Assembly: GCF_001194135.2 (NCBI RefSeq)
Contig: NC_068987.1
Location: 65,584,107-65,622,952 of the forward strand
Reading direction: 5' to 3'
Source of the DNA: Octopus bimaculoides
Taxonomy: Eukaryota
DNA length: 38,846 nt
Shown here: one piece after another, positions 2,485 through 37,188 of the stretch
Numbering within the stretch: the first letter of the stretch is position 1
Layout of the letters: every line of letters starts with the position of its first letter
The notes under the pieces: generated by a model
Databases searched by the model: none
The model's input: only the letters and a program-made list of their open reading frames with translations
What the model was told of the DNA's origin: nothing
Translations under genes and position numbers: made by a program

Positions 2485-2597
2485 AGGATTCAGAAATTAT
2501 TTTGTTTTGATTATTAACTATACACATAAATGACAAAAGTGCGCTACTATTACAGTATGAAATTAAGCAGCGAATACAATATTTTATAGATTACTAA

Positions 2598-2829
2598 GGC
2601 GATGAGCTGGCAGAAACTTTAGCGCGCTAGGCGAAATGTTTAGTGGTATTTCGACTGCCGTTACGTTTTGAGTTCAAATTCCGCCGAGGTCGACTTTGCC
2701 TTTTATCCTTTTGGAGTCGATAAATTAAGTACCAATTACGTATTGGGGTCGATGTAATCGACTTAATCCCTTTGCCTGTCCTTGTTTGTCCCCTCTATGT
2801 TTAGCCCCTTGTGGGCAATAAAGAAATAA
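2598..2829 (+). mobile_element. tRNA-derived SINE, near full length
   Basis: A-box-like TGGCAGAAACTTTAG and B-box GAGTTCAAATTCC, then GAGGTCGACTTTGCC...GTCGATAAATTAAGTACC. Same family recurs at 2830, 3024, 27655 and 37067. Confidence 0.9.
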
Positions 2830-3020
2830 GAAACGTTAGCATGCCGGGCAAAATGCTTAGCGGTATTTCGTCTGTCTTTATGTTCAAATTCCACCGAAGT
2901 CGACTTTGCCTTTCATTCTTTCGGGATCGATAAGTTAATTGCCAGTTGCGTACTGGCGTCAATCGACTGGCCCCCTCCCCCAAAATTTTGGACCTTGTGC
3001 CTTGAGTAGAAAAGAATATT
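2830..3020 (+). mobile_element. tRNA-derived SINE, 5'-truncated second copy
   Basis: GAAACGTTAGCATGCCGGGC...GTTCAAATTCC...GCCTTGAGTAGAAAAGAATATT. Confidence 0.9.
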
Positions 3021-3023
3021 TAA

Positions 3024-3203
3024 GGCGGCGAGCTGGCAAAAACGTTAGTACGCCGGGCGAAATGCATTGCGGTATTTCGTCTGTCTTTACTTTATGAGTT
3101 CAAATCCCGCCGAGGTCGACTTTGCCTTTCATCCTTTCGGGGTCAATAAATTAAGTACCAGTTGCGTACTGGTGTCAACTGTCCCGTCCCCCAAAATTTT
3201 GTA
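3024..3203 (+). mobile_element. tRNA-derived SINE, third copy
   Basis: GGCGGCGAGCTGGCAAAAACGTTAG...GAGTTCAAATCCCGCCGAGGTCGAC. Confidence 0.9.
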
Positions 3204-5873: not shown

Positions 5874-6540
5874 NNNNNNNNNNNNNNNNNNNNNNNNNNN
5901 NNNNNNNNNNNNNNNNNNNNNNNNNNNNNNNNNNNNNNNNNNNNNNNNNNNNNNNNNNNNNNNNNNNNNNNNNNNNNNNNNNNNNNNNNNNNNNNNNNNN
6001 NNNNNNNNNNNNNNNNNNNNNNNNNNNNNNNNNNNNNNNNNNNNNNNNNNNNNNNNNNNNNNNNNNNNNNNNNNNNNNNNNNNNNNNNNNNNNNNNNNNN
6101 NNNNNNNNNNNNNNNNNNNNNNNNNNNNNNNNNNNNNNNNNNNNNNNNNNNNNNNNNNNNNNNNNNNNNNNNNNNNNNNNNNNNNNNNNNNNNNNNNNNN
6201 NNNNNNNNNNNNNNNNNNNNNNNNNNNNNNNNNNNNNNNNNNNNNNNNNNNNNNNNNNNNNNNNNNNNNNNNNNNNNNNNNNNNNNNNNNNNNNNNNNNN
6301 NNNNNNNNNNNNNNNNNNNNNNNNNNNNNNNNNNNNNNNNNNNNNNNNNNNNNNNNNNNNNNNNNNNNNNNNNNNNNNNNNNNNNNNNNNNNNNNNNNNN
6401 NNNNNNNNNNNNNNNNNNNNNNNNNNNNNNNNNNNNNNNNNNNNNNNNNNNNNNNNNNNNNNNNNNNNNNNNNNNNNNNNNNNNNNNNNNNNNNNNNNNN
6501 NNNNNNNNNNNNNNNNNNNNNNNNNNNNNNNNNNNNNNNN
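5874..6540. other. Assembly gap
   Basis: N run between TA tracts. Confidence 1.
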
Positions 6541-9456: not shown

Positions 9457-10249
9457 ATTTAGCTTTACATTATTCACATGCTATACCGCCGGCGGCTCTT
9501 TCCATTTGGTCACTTTACACGATATAACATCTACTCACTGCATCTCTCACATAATCCCTCTCTTTCTATCTCCCTTTCTCTTTCTCTTTCTCTACTATCT
9601 AGCTTACTGTCTATCTAGCTCTCACTCTCTTTTTAACCCTGTCTCTCTGTCTCTCATTCCTTCTCTCTCTTTCGCTCTCTGTTTCTAAATTAACTACGTA
9701 TGCTCACTTATTCTCTGTCTTCTTAATTACATTTTCCACTTCTTCCCTCCACCAACCCTTCACAATCTCTTGTTCTGTTTCTTCTATGATTCCCCCTTCT
9801 TAGGTTTCTAAATACACACACACACTTACACACACACACACACACACACACACACGCGCACATGCGCGCAAACACACTCACACACTCACACATATTCTGT
9901 ATACACTCGAAGTGTGTGTGAGTGTGTATAAATATATAAATATATGCACATACAAACATACATAATCACTTGTTTATATATTTAATTATTACATGTCTGT
10001 TAGCATTTTGCATGGAAGATGCGCAAGCCATCCTGTAATATTTGTATACCTTGCATAGAATTGTGAAACCAAGGTGAGAAGCTCTACATTGTTGTTAAGA
10101 GAAATCATATCAAGGATGATCTGGAGGCATCAAAGCCTAACGAATACATGATCCGTTAGATTTCACGAGAAACTTCGGAATTAATTGAATTTCGCAAAGT
10201 AGGTTATCATTATTATCCAGTAACTTTACTTCTTGCTTTACTGAATATC

Positions 10250-10378
10250 ATTATCATCATCATCACCGTCATCGTCGCCGTAGTCATCGTCGTCGCCGTC
10301 GTCATCGTCGTCGCCGTCGTCATCGTCGTCGCCGTCGTCATCGTCGTCGTTGTCGTCGTCGTCATCATCATCAACAAC
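10250..10378. repeat. (ATC)n/(GTC)n trinucleotide mosaic with an 18-bp higher-order unit
   Basis: GTCATCGTCGTCGCCGTC repeated about 3-4 times. Confidence 0.9.
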
Positions 10379-10452
10379 GATGGCACACAGTATGGAAAAC
10401 AGACGGAACCGTCATGGATGCAATGTCTTAGATCTGCTGGAACTAACTGGAG

Positions 10453-11075
10453 NNNNNNNNNNNNNNNNNNNNNNNNNNNNNNNNNNNNNNNNNNNNNNNN
10501 NNNNNNNNNNNNNNNNNNNNNNNNNNNNNNNNNNNNNNNNNNNNNNNNNNNNNNNNNNNNNNNNNNNNNNNNNNNNNNNNNNNNNNNNNNNNNNNNNNNN
10601 NNNNNNNNNNNNNNNNNNNNNNNNNNNNNNNNNNNNNNNNNNNNNNNNNNNNNNNNNNNNNNNNNNNNNNNNNNNNNNNNNNNNNNNNNNNNNNNNNNNN
10701 NNNNNNNNNNNNNNNNNNNNNNNNNNNNNNNNNNNNNNNNNNNNNNNNNNNNNNNNNNNNNNNNNNNNNNNNNNNNNNNNNNNNNNNNNNNNNNNNNNNN
10801 NNNNNNNNNNNNNNNNNNNNNNNNNNNNNNNNNNNNNNNNNNNNNNNNNNNNNNNNNNNNNNNNNNNNNNNNNNNNNNNNNNNNNNNNNNNNNNNNNNNN
10901 NNNNNNNNNNNNNNNNNNNNNNNNNNNNNNNNNNNNNNNNNNNNNNNNNNNNNNNNNNNNNNNNNNNNNNNNNNNNNNNNNNNNNNNNNNNNNNNNNNNN
11001 NNNNNNNNNNNNNNNNNNNNNNNNNNNNNNNNNNNNNNNNNNNNNNNNNNNNNNNNNNNNNNNNNNNNNNNNNNN
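10453..11075. other. Assembly gap
   Basis: N run. Confidence 1.
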
Positions 11076-11136
11076 TATATATATATATATATATATGTAT
11101 ATCTGTAAAAATATGTGACACTTATTCGGTAACCAT

Positions 11137-11197
11137 GATAAAACTCCGAGTTTCGGATGCCGGGGCGGAAACCCACGCCGCCATCTCTTCAGTTATC
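11137..11197 (-). ncRNA. Type I hammerhead ribozyme motif
   Basis: Minus strand: GATAA-CTGAAGA-GATGGCGG cgtgggttt CCGCCCCGGCATCC-GAAA-CTCGGAG-TT-TTATC. Complete core, stem I GATAA/TTATC, near-palindromic helix III ACTCGGAGT, GTT triplet. Confidence 0.8.
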
Positions 11198-11263
11198 TGG
11201 CCAAGGAATGTAGGTAAGGGAGTAAAAAGCCCATAGTATTCGCGTAAGCGCACCAATCCGTAC

Positions 11264-11773
11264 ATGCCCCTATATGTATATACTCATCCACTCTCGCTTG
11301 AAACACACACATGCTCACCCACACATTCATGCACAGATAAAAATTTGTGCCTGCTAAATGGAGCTTGCATGTCCGAGACCATCATTTATGAGGCCACCGT
11401 GGACTCTATATCCACTAAGGACAGAGTTTCGACGAAGAAATACGTGGGCCTTACAGAGGGAAATTTCAAGGCCAGATTCAATAATCACACTTTGAGCTTC
11501 AGGTACTTGGATAAAAGGAAAACGATCAAATTATCCAGTCATATATGGTCCTTAAAAGGTGTCAGTTACAACATCCATTGGGAGATCTTAGCCAAGTGTA
11601 AACCTTACACCAACGGCAGCGGAAAGTGCGGTCTATGTGATATGGAAATATGGCTCATTTGGAAAGGCAGCTTAGACCCCACCACATGTCTAAATTCAAG
11701 AACTGAACTTTTTGGATCATGTCTACATGTGGCTAAATATTTACTACGTTTTTGGTCCCCCCGAGATTACTGA
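11264..11773 (+). CDS. GIY-YIG endonuclease domain of a Penelope-like retroelement (no RT attached)
   Basis: CTDKNLCLLNGAC, IIYEATV, KYVGLTEGNFKARFNNHTLSF, LSSHIWSLK, KPYTNGSGKCGLCDME, LNSRTE..CLH match PLE C-terminal endonucleases. No stop over 169 codons. Homology starts near 11310, so the first ATG may be fortuitous. Confidence 0.85.
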   Translation: MPLYVYTHPLSLETHTCSPTHSCTDKNLCLLNGACMSETIIYEATVDSISTKDRVSTKKYVGLTEGNFKARFNNHTLSFRYLDKRKTIKLSSHIWSLKGVSYNIHWEILAKCKPYTNGSGKCGLCDMEIWLIWKGSLDPTTCLNSRTELFGSCLHVAKYLLRFWSPRDY

Positions 11774-12485
11774 TAGGACTTGCTTTCTATATTGTGTCTA
11801 TGTACAAGTTTTTTTTTATCTCTCTATACTTTTTACTTAGATTTCTTATATATTTTATATATATTTTTTTACATATTTATAGATAATGTTTTGTATATTT
11901 TGCACACATATTTTTTCTGTATTCTCCCTGCCACCCTGGTAAATATTTCGTAAAAGACCCGTTCGTAACCTCTGTCTGAGACAGTTTCTTTACAAAAGTT
12001 TTTTCGAGTGCATTCAACGTATCTCACTTCCAAAGATTTGGCTACTATTTCTAGCACACCTTGCTACCGCGTGACACCTATTTGCGATAATGGACCCGAA
12101 ATACCAGTTATGTGGTAGCAGAACGTGCAAGAAATAGTAGCCAAATTTTTCCTGTTCTGGGGAAAGGAGCCGTTTAGAAATTTATTATTTCTAATTTTTG
12201 TAACCAGTGAATGTATTTCATTGAAATAGTATATCCTTGCGAGAGGTAAAACAAACTTTTTCAAACAGCTAGTCGTGCTACTTCAGGCTGATGACGAGCA
12301 AAGACTCAGAAACATGTCCCTGAATGCAGGCTGAGCTGGGTGGAGGAGTTTGTCTCCCCCTCACAAAGATAAGGACACAGGAAATGTATCAAGGCCTAAT
12401 AGGAAGCGGTCCAGCTTCCTAGGGCTAAATAGTAGTAGTATATTCCCTTATTTGGACTGTCACGTTAAGTTGGCAGTATACAACT

Positions 12486-12490
<5 letters not shown>
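11774..12490 (+). mobile_element. PLE 3' UTR / pseudo-LTR
   Basis: Follows the endonuclease stop, contains a hairpin and a hammerhead, and ends at (TA)n 12490-12517. Confidence 0.6.
12282..12324 (+). ncRNA. Minimal type I hammerhead ribozyme motif
   Basis: TTCAGG-CTGATGA-CGAGCAAAGACTCA-GAAA-CATG-TC-CCTGAA. 6-bp stem I, palindromic helix III ACATGT, GTC triplet ending at 12318. Confidence 0.85.
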
Positions 12491-12520
<30 letters not shown>

Positions 12521-21941: not shown

Positions 21942-22304
21942 NNNNNNNNNNNNNNNNNNNNNNNNNNNNNNNNNNNNNNNNNNNNNNNNNNNNNNNNNNN
22001 NNNNNNNNNNNNNNNNNNNNNNNNNNNNNNNNNNNNNNNNNNNNNNNNNNNNNNNNNNNNNNNNNNNNNNNNNNNNNNNNNNNNNNNNNNNNNNNNNNNN
22101 NNNNNNNNNNNNNNNNNNNNNNNNNNNNNNNNNNNNNNNNNNNNNNNNNNNNNNNNNNNNNNNNNNNNNNNNNNNNNNNNNNNNNNNNNNNNNNNNNNNN
22201 NNNNNNNNNNNNNNNNNNNNNNNNNNNNNNNNNNNNNNNNNNNNNNNNNNNNNNNNNNNNNNNNNNNNNNNNNNNNNNNNNNNNNNNNNNNNNNNNNNNN
22301 NNNN
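21942..22304. other. Assembly gap
   Basis: N run within TATG/TA arrays. Confidence 1.
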
Positions 22305-26380: not shown

Positions 26381-27654
26381 AATAATGTCTGACCATCTAT
26401 CCCGATTAATCTCCTAATGATAGGGTAACAACATGTTTGTTTTTGGCGGTGAAGAGTTTTCACACACCATATATATACGTTTAATCAATCCAAGTACGCA
26501 TTCCCCTTTTAAGCTTGTGCCGAACGATGCAGTTTATATTTGTATTGTTTGTGTTTATATGTGTGGGAGACTGAATCTATCTGATGGCTACTTAACTTTT
26601 ACTCCATCAGTGTGTTCAGACGTGGTAGCAAATAGACCACTGGAACTAAAATTTGCAATACTTCACTTATACTAGAAAAAACAGCATTAAAACGTCGCTA
26701 TTAAATTAGTGTATTACGTAAGTATTCTTCGACATTTTTGTAATTTGTTTTCCATTTTCTTTGCTGTTATTTAATCGATGTTAATTGATTTCTTTCAGAT
26801 CAACGAAGCAGTATTGTAATTTTATTGTTTGCCTTGGTTCTCAACTTATCATAAAATTTATGAGAGGTGGCCGAGAACGGCGGCCTTCATACGGCTAAAA
26901 GGATCTACTTTAAATATGTGGCTGTAGATTAGCGGGAAAAACCTGAGAGAATTCACTTAACTTTGGAGTGTCAAGGTAATCTGAGGGTTCCTGGGATTCC
27001 TCGATTCGTTCTATATAGTTGGCCCTTATTTTGAGGATCTTACATGGATGTTAATTTGTTGTTCCATACTGATTTTGATAATAATCATTATCTATTTATT
27101 AACTGAATCATTATTTTTATTGTAGATTTCTGTTTATCCTGTACATTTCTTACTAACTTTGGTGTTTGTGGGTAATAATAACAATAATAATAACTCACCT
27201 TATAAACCGACAGATCTTTAAGGCTATAAAATAAATAAATGTATACATGCATATAAACATATATCATAACTATTGTTGTCTTATTTGTATAACAACGTAT
27301 TATTTCATTACCGAAAAAATGGTTACCCCGACACGATGAAGCGGAGACGAGATAGAAAGAAACCTTCAACGTGATATAGAAAAGACATGGAACGACCCAT
27401 CCCCCGACGTCATTGTACGGCACAGCACTTGTTCATTGTGATCAAAAGTACAAATGCATTTAACTGAAAAATTCTTTAACCTTTGAGAAATTTTTATGAT
27501 AGCAGAAAATATACCAACTGACTTTCCTAGTTATACCCGCAAATTCAGAAATAAATCAAGCAACCACGGTCAGTTTAAAATTGTTCTATTGGTTGAATGA
27601 CTCCATTTTATGGTTTGTCTAAGGAAGTATACTCGGAATATTGCTGATGAGTAA

Positions 27655-27866
27655 GGCGGCGAGCTGGCAGAAACGTTAGCACGTCGGGCGTTATGCTTAA
27701 CGGTATTTCGTCTGTCTTTACGTTCTGAGTTCAAATTCCGCCGAGGTCGACTTTGCCTTTCATCCTTTCGGGGTCGATAAATTAAGTACAAGTTGTGTAC
27801 CGGGGTCAATCTAATCGACTGGCCCCCTCCCCCCAAATTTCGGGCCTTGTGCCTTGAGTAGAAAAT
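27655..27866 (+). mobile_element. tRNA-derived SINE, full length, with degenerate target-site duplication
   Basis: Same family as 2598. AATATTGCTG flanks at 27638-27647 and 27867-27876. Confidence 0.9.
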
Positions 27867-28164
27867 AATATTGCTGTCAAGTATATCAAAGTTTCGAACT
27901 TGGTCGGTTCATTGTAGTTTATGAGCATCCTAAATATCAGAAACTTGCTCATTTCTCTTCTTGGCAGTAAACATTACACCGAATAGAAAGAAAAAAACCA
28001 ACTTATAAAACGCATCTCTGCTGCTTAGCAAAGGTTATTACACCAAATTTTAATTGTAGATAGAAAATTATCTTAATTGCAGTGAGGAATAAAACAATTG
28101 TTAGCTGAAAGTACGTTAGAAAATTTGAACCAAATACCCCTTCAGACGCTCGCAATAAAGACAC

Positions 28165-30470: not shown

Positions 30471-31310
30471 CGCGCGCGCGCGCGTATGTGTGTGTGTGTG
30501 TGCGTGTGTGGGTGTGTGTATGTGCGTGTGAGACTGTCTGCGTGCGTGTGTGTGCGCGCACAAATATATATGTGTATAAATACATACGTAAATGTCGAAG
30601 GACGAGAATGAGTGCTCATCACCGAGAAAATGGATAAAATGTCTTTATTTGGGTACTAAGGTTACCATTGGTTTTATGTTAAAAAACATGAAAAAGAATC
30701 ATTTTGGCGTTGCATATAAATTCTTTTGCCAGACAGTGCTAATGCTGTATTAGAAAGGTTCAGCTTCAAGAATAGCATAAACTACATCGAACCAAATACA
30801 GATAGATCAAGAAGACGCAGACAGCGGAAAATATTACCGTTTAACCCACCTTATATCCTGAATGTCGCCTCTGTTCTAGCTGTGAAATTCTTAAAATTAA
30901 TAGATTATCATTTCCCCACATTCGGACAAAAACCATGAGATGTTCAACAGAAACACTGTTAAAGTTAGTTATAGTTGCCTCGCCAATACATGGTCGATAA
31001 TATTCAACCACAATAAGAATAAATACACCAGAACTACCATCGAAAGAAAGATACTGTAACTGTAGATCTCCAAACCACTGTCCTCTAAATAATGACTGTC
31101 TGGAAAAAGTTAAGGATCCCAGCGGAGCAACTCGTTGAAAGAAAGATACACACAACACCTGGTGTCATTCAAGAACAAAAATAAAATACATGCGGCATCC
31201 TTATCCAATATGATATGGACATTGAAAGAAGGGAGAGTAAGCAACTCAATCATTGCTAAACCCATAAAAGGCAGAGGAGTTTGTGTGTTGTATATATTCA
31301 ATGTTCACGT

Positions 31311-31735
31311 TATGTTCTGTCCCTGAACGTGAACATTGAATATATACAACACACAAACTCCATACATAGAAACATACATACAATCCCCAGCGATGAAGTC
31401 CCTCAGCACGCAAACATACAAACATCACATATATCAATAACCAAATGTGAGCTCTGTGTCACTGAAAAGCTAAATATTATACAGTCTGCAGATAAAATCC
31501 TAAATATTAAGGATGAATCATTCTCTTTCTGCATACACAAGCAATATTTCACACTCCGACATTTCAAAGAGGAACCAACACTCGCACTGCCAACCTCACA
31601 AGGATATGTTCTGTCCCTGAACGTGAACATTGAATATATACAACACACAAACTCCATACATAGAAACATACATACAATCCCCAGCGATGAAGTCCCTCAG
31701 CACGCAAACATACAAACATCACATATATCAATAAC
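31311..31735 (+). repeat. 131-bp direct repeat (31311-31441 and 31605-31735) plus a 36-bp perfect hairpin (31276-31361)
   Basis: The two copies read identical. 31276-31311 is the reverse complement of 31326-31361. Confidence 0.95.
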
Positions 31736-31957
31736 ATAATATAATATAATGCACACAAATTCACTATCCAACTGGGTTTTCTCCCAAAAGTCAAATCGAG
31801 GGAGATAATTACTCAAAAGCTGTCAGCCAAGAGTAACGCCCCTTGTTTTGTATACGAGACTTTTTGTGAATTACCGAGAGTTTTCCTGAGACAGTTTGTG
31901 TTTTCATCCAAAATGGAGACGAACACCATTTCTTCATGCGATCAGCTTGAAAAATTG

Positions 31958-33097: not shown

Positions 33098-33438
33098 ACG
33101 TGTGTTTGTGTGTACAGAACAATAGGCAATATTAGAGGTTTAGAAATAATAACAATAATATATATATATATATTAGTAAAATGTAAAGGAATACCACAAA
33201 ACGATTACCAGTTTGCTCTCAGTTAGGTATTCAAAATATGTTATTCAACAGTTTACATATAAATCCAATAAAGTTCTTATAAGATAAGAAATTAGAGGAA
33301 TATGCCGTTGGATAATTTTGAATATATTTCCTTAACCATATAGGTTTCCTGGAGTATTAATATTGACAATATTAAGAATAAGGATTACTCCGAAGTTGCA
33401 ATAGCATTACATTTAATTCTATAATTATATACTGCCTT

Positions 33439-33538
33439 TTAAGACCATGCCTTTTAACACATGTTTCAATTGCACCGACTAGTATTCGTTGCAATTGCAA
33501 CCCTACTATAAAACGGTGCAGTCTCTTCTGGGTCTTAA
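33439..33538 (-). ncRNA. Damaged hammerhead copy (sense to the endonuclease)
   Basis: TTAAGACC-CAGAAGA-GACTGCACCG..CGGTGCAATT-GAAAC-ATGTG-[~10-nt duplication]-TGGTCTTAA. Confidence 0.6.
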
Positions 33539-34237
33539 CTTGATAGCCCTCGGTGTGGCTGTTTAATGATTTTTTAAAATAAACTTTGCGTTGTATAATT
33601 TAGAGCTGTCCGTCATGTCAGGCGCGTGAAATCTCTATTTCAAGTTCTTATTGGATAATCATTTTTAGTCCATCATTTAGAAACCTTGTATAGTTTAAAT
33701 GATAATTATTCATTTATACTTTGCAAATGTGAACTTCCTCATGTACAAGATTTTCAATACATGATCCTGTCTAGAATTTATTCATTACCTTTGTATGTGA
33801 AAATCTAATAAAATTCTTCTAAGCATAAGTCACATCTATTGGTTCCAGGTCTGTATGGTTTTGCATTTCATCGTATAGTCCTTGTTACTATCCTTAAAAG
33901 ACCAGATTAATTTGCTAAGACTCGTTTGGAACTTCTTATTTTTGTCTTTAAATGAACTCAAATGATTTGCCAGGCTCCTCTTAAAAATTAATGATGTCCC
34001 GCCGATGTAAAAGAATTCCTTACCCTCAGATGTAAATATACATCTAAATTACATTTTTAGTTTTACACTTATTTTCCACATAACATGATTCCCGTTTAGA
34101 ACTATTGCAAAAATAGCCTTTTATATTTCCATCAGAAATAGAGATTGCTCGCATTACATTTGACGGACAGCTCCAAATTATACAACGCAAAGTTTATAAA
34201 ATAAAGTCATTAAACGGCCATATCGAGGGATATCAAG

Positions 34238-34327
34238 TTAGGACCCTGAAGAGACTGCACCGTTTTATAGTAGGTTGCAATTGCAACGATAACTAATTGG
34301 TACAATTGAAACATGTGTTGGTCTTAA
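34238..34327 (+). ncRNA. Type I hammerhead motif with long stem II (inverted copy)
   Basis: TTAGGACC-CTGAAGA-GACTGCACC...GTTGCAATTGCAAC...GGTACAATT-GAAAC-ATGT-GTT-GGTCTTAA. 8-bp stem I, intact core, GTT triplet. Confidence 0.75.
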
Positions 34328-34422
34328 AATGCGGTACATAATTATAGAATTAAAGGTAATGCTATTGCTACTTCAGGGTAATCCTTATTTTTAATATTAT
34401 CTATATGTATATATATATATTT

Positions 34423-35150: not shown

Positions 35151-37066
35151 CAATAGGTATTATTTTATTTTATAACACAAACGGTGAATAATAAGCTAAT
35201 CTATTTATTATAAGTTCCTGATGAACTAGTCACTAGAACCACATAGTTGAGAAACGAATTTCTTAACACAGTTACATTCTGAGTTCAAATTCAGCCCAAC
35301 TTCTTTCATCTTTCTGAGGAAGGGTTCAATAAAGAATTACCAATAAAATACTGTAATTGACTGAATTGTCTTTTAACCCGGTTATCTTGCGGGCATAAGA
35401 ATTTATGGCCTTTTGTCAATTAAAAAAAATTTTCGATACAGATCGTTTATGAACTTTCTAAAGATCATCTTGCAACACAATTTATAATCATTTTAAAATA
35501 TAACAAAATAATCACAACATAAGACATACATCCCTTCATGCCCATGGATAAGGAATAGAACTTATCCATCAAGCAATTTCAAACAACTTGGACTCATATA
35601 TTAAAAAAAGGTTAAGAATCTCATATATCGTATTACGTATATAAGTATTATATTTAGAGCACTCCATTTTATTTTTGTTCTAGAATAAAGTACATTCAAG
35701 TAAGGAATAAAAGCAAATAACTAAATGGATAAAAGATAATAAGAAAATATTTATACGCCACCATTCTTCAAAACTTACTTAAAAATTCTCGTCTGACAAA
35801 AGAGATTTAGATTCACTAGTGACATTTTGTAAAACGAAAATGCCGTAGACTAACGTGATCAGAATTCTGTCTACATTTTACAGTAAAAAAATAATTTTAT
35901 TTTAAGTTTACTTTAATATTCATCGTATATGCAATTTCTTCATCCTCCATTCTCTTCATTCAGAGCTAAATATTGATCCTGATCTTTATATAATGTCCCC
36001 CATCAAGTATTTTCAGTAAACAACAATCAATGTAGGACAGCAATTCACCGATACATCGACTACAAATAAATGGACACAATCACTGAGAAAACTATCGATA
36101 TGAATATTAACAATACTACTGACGGAACGGACAATGAGGAAGACATTACAACTTAGCTTAAACAACTTAACAAAATAAATCTATCAAAAAGAGTTAAAAC
36201 AAAAAAATGAAGAAACTGTACTAAGAATCTTTGTGAATTCTGTGTTCCAAAATCAACAGAAATACAATAGTTTAAGCCAACCCGAAAACTGATTTGCCTA
36301 GATAACAATGTTTAGATGGCAGATGACCTTATGAATGTTCGATAACCTAACAGTTTTTGCTTCTCATAGTAAATTATTTTTTTAAATATTGTTATTTCCA
36401 TCATCCTTTCACGGATATTATTAATACTTAGCCCAAAAGTAATATCAGTTTCACTAAACAACCATTGTCATCACTACAATCATCACTGTTGAAAACATAT
36501 AATTTAATGGAAGTGTATCAATGACGTACGCAATATTTTCATTTTACTGAGATTGCTAACCTGATACGCTTTCATGTAATGAGAGATTTCTTCCTTTACA
36601 TATGTTGTATAATATAAACGCATGCGCAGTTCGAGGATGAACGTCAATAACACGTGCAATCTGCTTCCATCTTGAAAACATTAGTGCACTGCTTGATTAA
36701 CGTATGTTAACTACGATATACATTTATAACTTCGTGTCAGAAATGTCGCCTAAACCGGATTATTGGCTTTATCGATGTGCATTACATGTATTGGTGGCAC
36801 TTCGCTGTTTCTTATTTTGTTCGCCAATAATGTGGCAGATATGATGAGCTGCTAATGGACTGTAATTGAAGTAATTGAGACTAACGTCACACTATAAGGA
36901 ATATTTCTAAATGGCTGAATTTCAGTTCTTAACTCCAATCCCTTTATCTGGTGTCTGTTCAAAGAGGATTTCACACAATTTCTTGTGACTATTGAGATTA
37001 AATGAAAATTGCACTGCAATTGTGCACTATTGATAAGCGACGTACCAATATTTATATAAATTTTAA

Positions 37067-37188
37067 GGCGGCGAGCTAGCAGAATCGTCAGCACGCCGGA
37101 CAAAATACTTAGCAGCATTGCGTTCGTCTTTACAATCTGAGTTCAAATTTCAATAAAGTCGGCTTTACTTTTCATTCTTTAGGGGTCG
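37067..37188 (+). mobile_element. tRNA-derived SINE, 3'-truncated and diverged
   Basis: GGCGGCGAGCTAGCAGAATCGTCAGCACGCCGG...GAGTTCAAATTTC. Confidence 0.8.

Follow-up and report, generated by a model that had tools for sequence, protein, structure and literature searches.

The 38.8-kb stretch of the Octopus bimaculoides genome considered here (38,846 nt; NCBI RefSeq assembly GCF_001194135.2, contig NC_068987.1, forward-strand positions 65,584,107 to 65,622,952; hereafter the window) is A+T-rich, filled with microsatellites and broken by six assembly gaps. Our subject is a 1.4-kb block of complex sequence that sits between two (TA)n microsatellites. Within it, an open frame for the GIY-YIG endonuclease of a Penelope-like element (PLE) stands between two hammerhead motifs that lie on opposite strands and face outward. 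The coordinates of these features are collected in Table 1. The minus-strand fragment at the left end of the block comprises ~68 nt of 3' untranslated region (UTR), a hammerhead and a 40-nt tail that abuts (TA)n, and the plus-strand part comprises the endonuclease frame and a long 3' region that corresponds to the UTR and the pseudo-long terminal repeat (pLTR).

Table 1. Features of the block and of the microsatellites that border it, in window positions.
Feature	Position	Strand	Remark
Left (TA)n target microsatellite	11076-11096		abuts assembly gap 10453-11075 and may be longer
3'-terminal PLE-type fragment, ~170 nt	11097-11265	minus	inner boundary approximate
Type-I hammerhead motif, left	11137-11197	minus	descriptor and manual reading
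(TA)/(CA) microsatellite-like spacer	11266-11326		contains tatatgtatata at 11272-11283
5'-truncated remnant of an open reading frame, with complete GIY-YIG endonuclease domain	11327-11773	plus	natural stop at 11771-11773
3' region (UTR/pLTR), 717 nt, reaching the right (TA)n	11774-12490	plus
Near-perfect 119-nt hairpin in the 3' region	12032-12150	plus	folding energy against shuffles
Type-I hammerhead motif, right	12282-12324	plus	descriptor and manual reading
Right (TA)14 target microsatellite	12491-12518

The frame is free of stops from 11264 to 11773 on the plus strand (169 aa), and its C-terminal 148 codons make up a GIY-YIG endonuclease domain that ends at a natural stop, coinciding with the natural C-terminus of the family. 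Homology to PLE GIY-YIG endonucleases spans 11327-11770 (tblastn E = 9e-42 against the relative P0001). A phmmer search with the window open reading frame (ORF) reached a best E of 2.5e-31 and returned 3422 representative clusters at E ≤ 1e-3, the full HMMER scan covering 1.84 billion representatives and the clusters being drawn at 50% identity; 2115 proteins matched at E ≤ 1e-10 in the protein search. An earlier sequence-only reading of this DNA had described a stop-free PLE-type endonuclease frame with a characteristic set of motifs, all of which were found (IIY, YVG, R, H, CGLCDME, LNSRTE and CLH). ORF calling, tblastn, phmmer and the family alignment all agree with that description, and the window protein retains 12 of the 12 invariant columns of the alignment. 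It departs from the family at three positions: the nearly invariant Lys after the catalytic Glu is Ile, a linker Pro is Leu and the first linker Cys is His. The interval from GIY to YIG, IIYEATVDSISTKDRVSTKKYVG, contains no Cys, the CxxC before the catalytic Glu reads CGLCDME and the CxH after the catalytic Asn reads LNSRTELFGSCLH. The linker itself reads H-S-C-TDKNL-C, in which the second and third Cys are kept and the His occupies a first position that lies at or beyond the truncation point. The Met at 11369 is no start shared by the family, relatives having K or T there.

General-purpose databases gave little direct sign of this domain. Pfam returned no match to the window ORF; its GIY-YIG model matches 4 of 23 family members (best E 1e-5) and was reached through these relatives only. 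A word-indexed protein search with the ORF gave no match, the ORF was absent from exact-protein look-ups of public assemblies, and no close relative of it was found among 15 billion proteins. Sequence searches of the PDB, run with the single protein and with a profile, returned nothing relevant. An AlphaFold model of the frame (pLDDT 75) places its secondary structure elements in the order beta-beta-alpha-alpha-beta-alpha. Compared with the PDB by Foldseek, the model had no significant match, the best being APOBECs at a TM of 0.28; compared with BFVD, it ranked GIY-YIG nucleases at the top, all with E ≥ 0.01 and none of them significant. A GIY-YIG fold of the window protein thus appears to be backed indirectly, with weak support from the BFVD comparison of the predicted structure.

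Most database relatives of the window endonuclease are short fragments with the matched domain at their C-terminus, and the long ones carry a reverse transcriptase (RT) upstream, for example P0114 (723 aa), which has ADKT and YRDD motifs. Among the homologues of at least 600 aa (n = 43), Y.DD is present in all 43, as are CxxC..E and N..CxH; DKT is present in 42, the CxCX5C linker in 41 and RWK in 26, and a Cys between GIY and YIG in none. Together with insertion into (TA)n, elements of <3 kb and canonical hammerheads, these motif features define the Hydra clade of PLEs (PMC8557442). Because the long homologues show the diagnostic features of the clade, we assign the window endonuclease, on the basis of its sequence, to the Hydra clade. 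As in described members, the GIY-YIG domain is C-terminal and lacks the CCHH cysteines, the CxCX5C linker appears to be kept in part, CxxC and CxH surround the catalytic Glu and Asn, the target is (TA)n and a hammerhead lies in the 3'/pLTR region (PMC8557442). Relatives include an RT with DKT and RWK, measure ~705 aa and come from elements of <3 kb. The window copy differs in being 5' truncated and without an RT, in its 717-nt 3' region, which is longer than that of the sampled relatives, and in the C.A at 10.1/11.1 of its hammerhead.

Public data hold a great abundance of Hydra-clade endonuclease fragments, as the 3422 clusters indicate, with corals and pipefish included. Named matches of this type came from the coral Oculina patagonica and the pipefishes Nerophis ophidion and Entelurus aequoreus. 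Hydra-clade-type endonucleases therefore range more widely than the phyla listed in the 2021 description of the clade.

No RT homology was found upstream of the frame. When full-length relatives were used as tblastn queries, they aligned over the linker and endonuclease only (11297-11770), and element homology begins at 11297-11327, inside the CxCX5C linker. Because full-length relatives carry RT upstream, the lack of RT here reflects routine 5' truncation at about 11297-11327. Since the alignment holds linker and endonuclease and no RT, the window copy (copy A) is a 5'-truncated, non-autonomous remnant and not a functional element. Two other Hydra-clade remnants lie in the window, and tblastn places their truncation at points other than that of copy A. 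Copy B (30828-31592, plus strand) carries frameshifts and extends further upstream in the protein than copy A, and copy C (34009-33814, minus strand) is a degenerate endonuclease remnant. In the database fragments, the N-terminal extensions are continuous in length, from 0 to ~230 aa. Such variable truncation points, which target-primed reverse transcription usually produces, argue for random 5' truncation and against a discrete endonuclease-only unit.

Copy C also provides a local example of how PLE copies are arranged. Its 3' region is repeated in inverted orientation upstream (34150-34406 on the plus strand against 33359-33624 on the minus strand), with an alignment score of 332 against a null maximum of 26. 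In the upstream hammerhead (34238-34327, plus strand), the core is intact and helix II measures 55 nt; in the downstream one, CAGAAGA replaces CUGAAGA and 9 nt are inserted. The copy C block (33359-34406) is a textbook case of a PLE paired with its own inversion. Downstream of copy B, no hammerhead was found. At least four PLE-derived pieces lie within 39 kb. Separately, copy B holds a 136-bp segment that is duplicated at 99% identity (31311-31446 and 31605-31740).

The hammerhead motifs were sought with a relaxed type-I descriptor, which asked for a helix I of at least 5 bp, CUGANGA, a helix II of at least 3 bp, GAAA, a helix III closed by A15.1-U16.1, and H17. It matched exactly twice in the window, on the minus strand to the left of the frame and on the plus strand to its right. 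Both matches fall at the same coordinates as the two full-core hammerheads reported in the sequence-only reading, and they compare with a chance expectation of 0.02 matches on average and 1 at most in 200 dinucleotide shuffles. A stricter descriptor recovered copy C's motif only, both motifs of the block being missed owing to irregularities in helix II. The minus motif has a helix I of GAUAA/UUAUC (extendable to ~11 bp), CUGAAGA, a G+C-rich helix II of 31 nt, GAAA, a helix III of ACU-CGG-AGU and U17, with predicted cleavage between 11142 and 11141. Its irregularity is one extra unpaired C on the 3' side of helix II, beside the core, and the G-C pair at 10.1/11.1 is kept only with one C bulged. 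The plus motif has a helix I of UUCAGG/CCUGAA (6 bp), CUGAUGA, a helix II of C.A plus GAG/CUC closed by the loop CAAAGA, GAAA, a 1-bp helix III with the palindromic loop CAUG, and C17, with predicted cleavage between 12318 and 12319; here the irregularity is the C.A pair at 10.1/11.1. Thermodynamic folds, whether centroid or minimum free energy, form helices I and II of both motifs, and the single-sequence folding z-scores are -1.2 and -1.0. We regard both as hammerhead motifs that are possibly impaired, and as putative ribozymes.

The architecture of the plus motif matches that of the canonical metazoan type-I hammerheads described in PMC4209133. With these PLE hammerheads the block shares an open helix I of ~6 bp, a short helix II, a helix III of 1-3 bp closed by a small palindromic loop (CAUG in the plus motif), a site in PLE flanking repeats and an extreme variability of sequence between families. 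It differs from them in the plus motif, where the highly conserved G10.1-C11.1 is replaced by C.A, and in the minus motif, with its extra C and unusually long (31-nt) helix II. In vitro cleavage by metazoan PLE hammerheads is poor (PMC4209133). In its core and helix III, the minus motif resembles the hammerhead of two relatives' loci, L001 and L007 (CUGAAGA...GAAACUCAGAGUU), and it lies 40 nt from (TA)n, compared with 31-39 nt in Hydra-clade relatives. A GAAACAUGU-style helix III is common to the plus motif and copy C. Exact-pattern scans of JGI metagenome contigs with each of the two hammerheads yielded 0 matches.

The two arms of the block are unrelated in sequence. Local alignments of the left arm (11097-11330, minus strand) with the 3' region (11774-12490), copy B and copy C were all at the null level. 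More permissive alignments of the parts likeliest to overlap gave p = 0.14 and p = 0.23; in particular, 11774-11905 had no significant similarity to the inner minus fragment (p = 0.14). The sequence-only reading had stated that the two ribozymes share no sequence beyond the core and that the block is not a self-inversion, and had placed (TA)n on both outer sides; on these points our results and that reading coincide. Between the left arm and copy A runs a spacer of 30-60 bp, tatatgtatata followed by CA-rich DNA. The interval 11261-11345 is the sole part of the block (11097-12490) that matches elsewhere in the window, and its matches are (TA)/(CA) microsatellite tracts.

At the loci of full-length and fragmentary relatives in other organisms, a sense-strand hammerhead lies 74-155 nt past the stop, shortly before (TA)n. 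Three of these loci, L001 (6517-7213), L007 and L008, contain head-to-head truncated pairs with outward hammerheads between (TA)n tracts, and in L007 an 80-bp (TA)n parts the two copies. Because these loci and the window's own copy C show the same arrangement, outward hammerheads and outer (TA)n around truncated copies constitute a standard PLE layout. The block agrees with the standard PLE insertion, in which pLTRs occur together with a 5'-truncated copy that lies next to them in inverted orientation (Fig. 2 of PMC8557442), in having upstream an inverted 3' end that carries a hammerhead, ribozymes that face outward and (TA)n on either side, all of which recur in copy C, L001, L007 and L008. 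It differs in two respects: the inverted arm does not match the reverse complement of the 3' end of the copy itself, and a microsatellite-like spacer stands between the two. In vitro, a purified PLE protein both cuts and extends the two strands of its target (PMC11167929), which provides a plausible route to inverted pairs. A further point of comparison is provided by the non-LTR retrozymes, which are short, non-coding, hammerhead-bearing and related to PLE pLTRs, and which are thought to be non-autonomous PLE derivatives (bioRxiv 10.64898/2026.07.22.740005). The 170-nt minus fragment fits them in size and content. However, retrozymes are tandem same-strand repeats that give circular RNAs, whereas the block has one motif per strand, and no tandem repeats were found in 11097-12490.

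Taken together, we think it probable that the locus is ordinary PLE debris in a (TA)n hotspot, that is, a 5'-truncated Hydra-clade copy lying head-to-head with the 3' end of another family. The most economical reading of this arrangement is that two PLE families inserted independently into a single hotspot. The plus-strand part (~11300-12490) would be a dead-on-arrival Hydra-clade copy, for which a nick in (TA)n would have primed reverse transcription of a 3' region with its pLTR hammerhead; copying would have continued through the last 148 codons, the GIY-YIG endonuclease, and ended before the RT. The minus-strand part (~11097-11265) would be the last 170 nt of a different PLE family (3' UTR, hammerhead and tail), which entered the same tract facing the other way. 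Outward ribozymes and outer (TA)n would follow automatically from two such events, since the 3' region of each PLE copy carries a hammerhead and finishes beside (TA)n. Target-primed retrotransposons are known to leave dead-on-arrival 5'-truncated copies and head-to-head structures at their target sites, as in LINE-1 twin priming, which concerns another class of element and in which both arms come from one RNA.

Two separate insertions are suggested by the leftover microsatellite-like DNA between the arms, as in L007. Chance adjacency of two families is also unsurprising, because at least four PLE pieces aimed at (TA)n occur within 39 kb. We further suppose that all 717 nt of the 3' region are part of the endonuclease copy and that the two ribozymes and the protein fragment have no function at this locus. 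Of the interpretation offered by the sequence-only reading, the PLE endonuclease, the hammerheads, the (TA)n target and the absence of self-inversion stand. Its proposal that the layout calls for either a chimera made by template switching or a propagating endonuclease-only unit is not supported, given the random truncation, the start of the copy within the linker, the standard layout and the microsatellite spacer. For annotation, the locus should be masked as Hydra-clade PLE debris, not recorded as a gene or a new ribozyme system; beyond that, it matters little.

Several observations weigh against this interpretation. The plus hammerhead lies 508 nt past the stop and 166 nt from (TA)n, compared with 74-155 nt and 31-39 nt in relatives, and a TA-like tract (11853-11885) and the strong hairpin intervene between the stop and the hammerhead. 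It may therefore be that a third insertion, and not the endonuclease copy, brought in the right-hand hammerhead. There is also some ambiguity in the short spacer, in that the CA-rich codons from 11297 may already be element, and the spacer is the one feature from which we infer that the two insertions were independent. Finally, Rfam reports no hammerhead at the locus, either at the gathering threshold or at E ≤ 10. This last point carries no weight, because Rfam 15 at E ≤ 1 also misses the textbook type-I hammerheads of relatives, those of L001, L002, L006, L007 and L008 (for example, CCCCUGAUGAGUGGGCAACCACGAAACAGGCUUGUAGGGA). Rfam is effectively blind to PLE hammerheads with an open helix I, and scans that rely on it under-report them.

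The 3' region deserves separate comment. The hairpin folds with a dG of -59.5 kcal/mol (z = -11), and 0 of 200 shuffles fold as well; no counterpart was seen among the relatives examined. It could mark where another truncated copy begins with a snap-back 5' end, or be a small inserted foldback or a structured element of the 3' UTR. At 717 nt, the region is longer than in cnidarian-type relatives and may hold more than one insertion, given the TA-like tract at 11853-11885. Copy C likewise has a long 3' region, with ~260 nt to its own hammerhead. The contigs of the closest relatives, P0001 and P0002, end before their 3' regions, and the 3' comparison was made with other loci.

A single event could also have produced the block. 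In this scenario, which we consider unlikely, reverse transcription was primed at both ends of one (TA)n break, or template switching by the RT took place, with RNAs from two PLE families as templates, and the truncated cDNAs were joined in the middle of the block. The ability of purified PLE protein to cleave and extend both strands in vitro (PMC11167929) would supply the route to such an inverted pair; same-family inverted pairs are common, the arms here are unrelated, and both outer ends abut (TA)n. However, the TA remnant and CA-rich DNA between the arms would not be expected from one-event joining of cDNAs, although filler DNA is possible, and nothing demands a single event in a window so dense in PLEs. 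If true, the block at 11097-12490 would be natural evidence that a PLE enzyme uses templates of another family, and thus bear on its template choice, and it might be the founder of a mobilizable composite.

Less probable again is that the minus fragment is the inverted partner of the endonuclease copy from its own family, that the copy has lost its own 3' end, and that the plus hammerhead came with a third PLE or retrozyme-like insertion starting near 12032. The minus hammerhead fits Hydra-clade relatives in its core, helix III and distance from (TA)n, whereas the plus hammerhead is atypically far from the stop codon and from (TA)n. Consistent with this alternative, a TA-like tract lies 80 nt past the stop, the z = -11 hairpin could be a snap-back 5' end, and the overlap available for a same-family comparison is just a few tens of nt. 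Nevertheless, 11774-11905 lacks significant similarity to the inner minus fragment (p = 0.14), and the descriptor scan of the window found no leftover hammerhead or tail of the endonuclease copy past 12518. Moreover, because copy C combines a long 3' region (~260 nt to its hammerhead) with a GAAACAUGU-type helix III like that of the plus motif, the plus hammerhead fits a Hydra-clade element of the source genome.

We give little credence to the suggestion that either hammerhead motif, or both, resembles a hammerhead by chance or is a decayed and inactive relic unrelated to PLE biology. Rfam does not match them, each has a defect where helix II meets the core, their single-sequence folding z-scores are weak, and metazoan PLE hammerheads are in any case poor cleavers in vitro (PMC4209133). 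However, two descriptor matches were found where 0.02 were expected, both motifs have the position and orientation expected of PLE 3' ends beside (TA)n, and Rfam misses the unambiguous hammerheads of relatives as well. A chance origin of the motifs is unlikely; inactivity of both copies is quite possible and would be compatible with ordinary PLE debris.

It is very improbable that 11097-12490 is a propagating, ribozyme-delimited non-autonomous unit that encodes an endonuclease only and is mobilized in trans as a whole. In its favour are the open frame with every invariant residue intact, the ribozyme motif on either side and the view that non-LTR retrozymes derive from PLEs and are non-autonomous (bioRxiv 10.64898/2026.07.22.740005). 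However, the frame starts within the linker motif without a native start (Met 11369 stands where relatives have K or T), the nearly invariant K after the catalytic Glu is I and Leu stands in place of the conserved linker Pro, each ribozyme lies on a different strand, which leaves no single transcript with both in the active sense, tandem repeats are absent, and there is neither a second copy in the window nor a close relative among 15 billion proteins.

Some features of the wider window are worth recording. The edges of the gaps at 676-927, 5874-6540 and 10453-11075 are (TA)n, as seen directly, and (TA)n edges are apparent for the gap at 21942-22304 from the inverted-repeat listing. The assembly breaks at the very microsatellites that PLEs target, and gap-adjacent PLE ends may be under-represented or mis-joined. 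According to ARAGORN, the window contains no tRNA. Just left of the gap that borders the block, 10239-10379 consists of a 9-nt periodic repeat of the TCATCGTCG / TCGCCGTCG type, which yields long poly-Asp/Thr-like open frames on both strands and is probably a minisatellite, not an exon. A dispersed family of short repeats occurs at 2589-3189, 27646-27872 and 37064-37188, in copies of ~175-280 nt with 78-93% identity; it contains GTTCAAATTCCGCCGAGGTCGAC and resembles a short interspersed nuclear element (SINE) in appearance.

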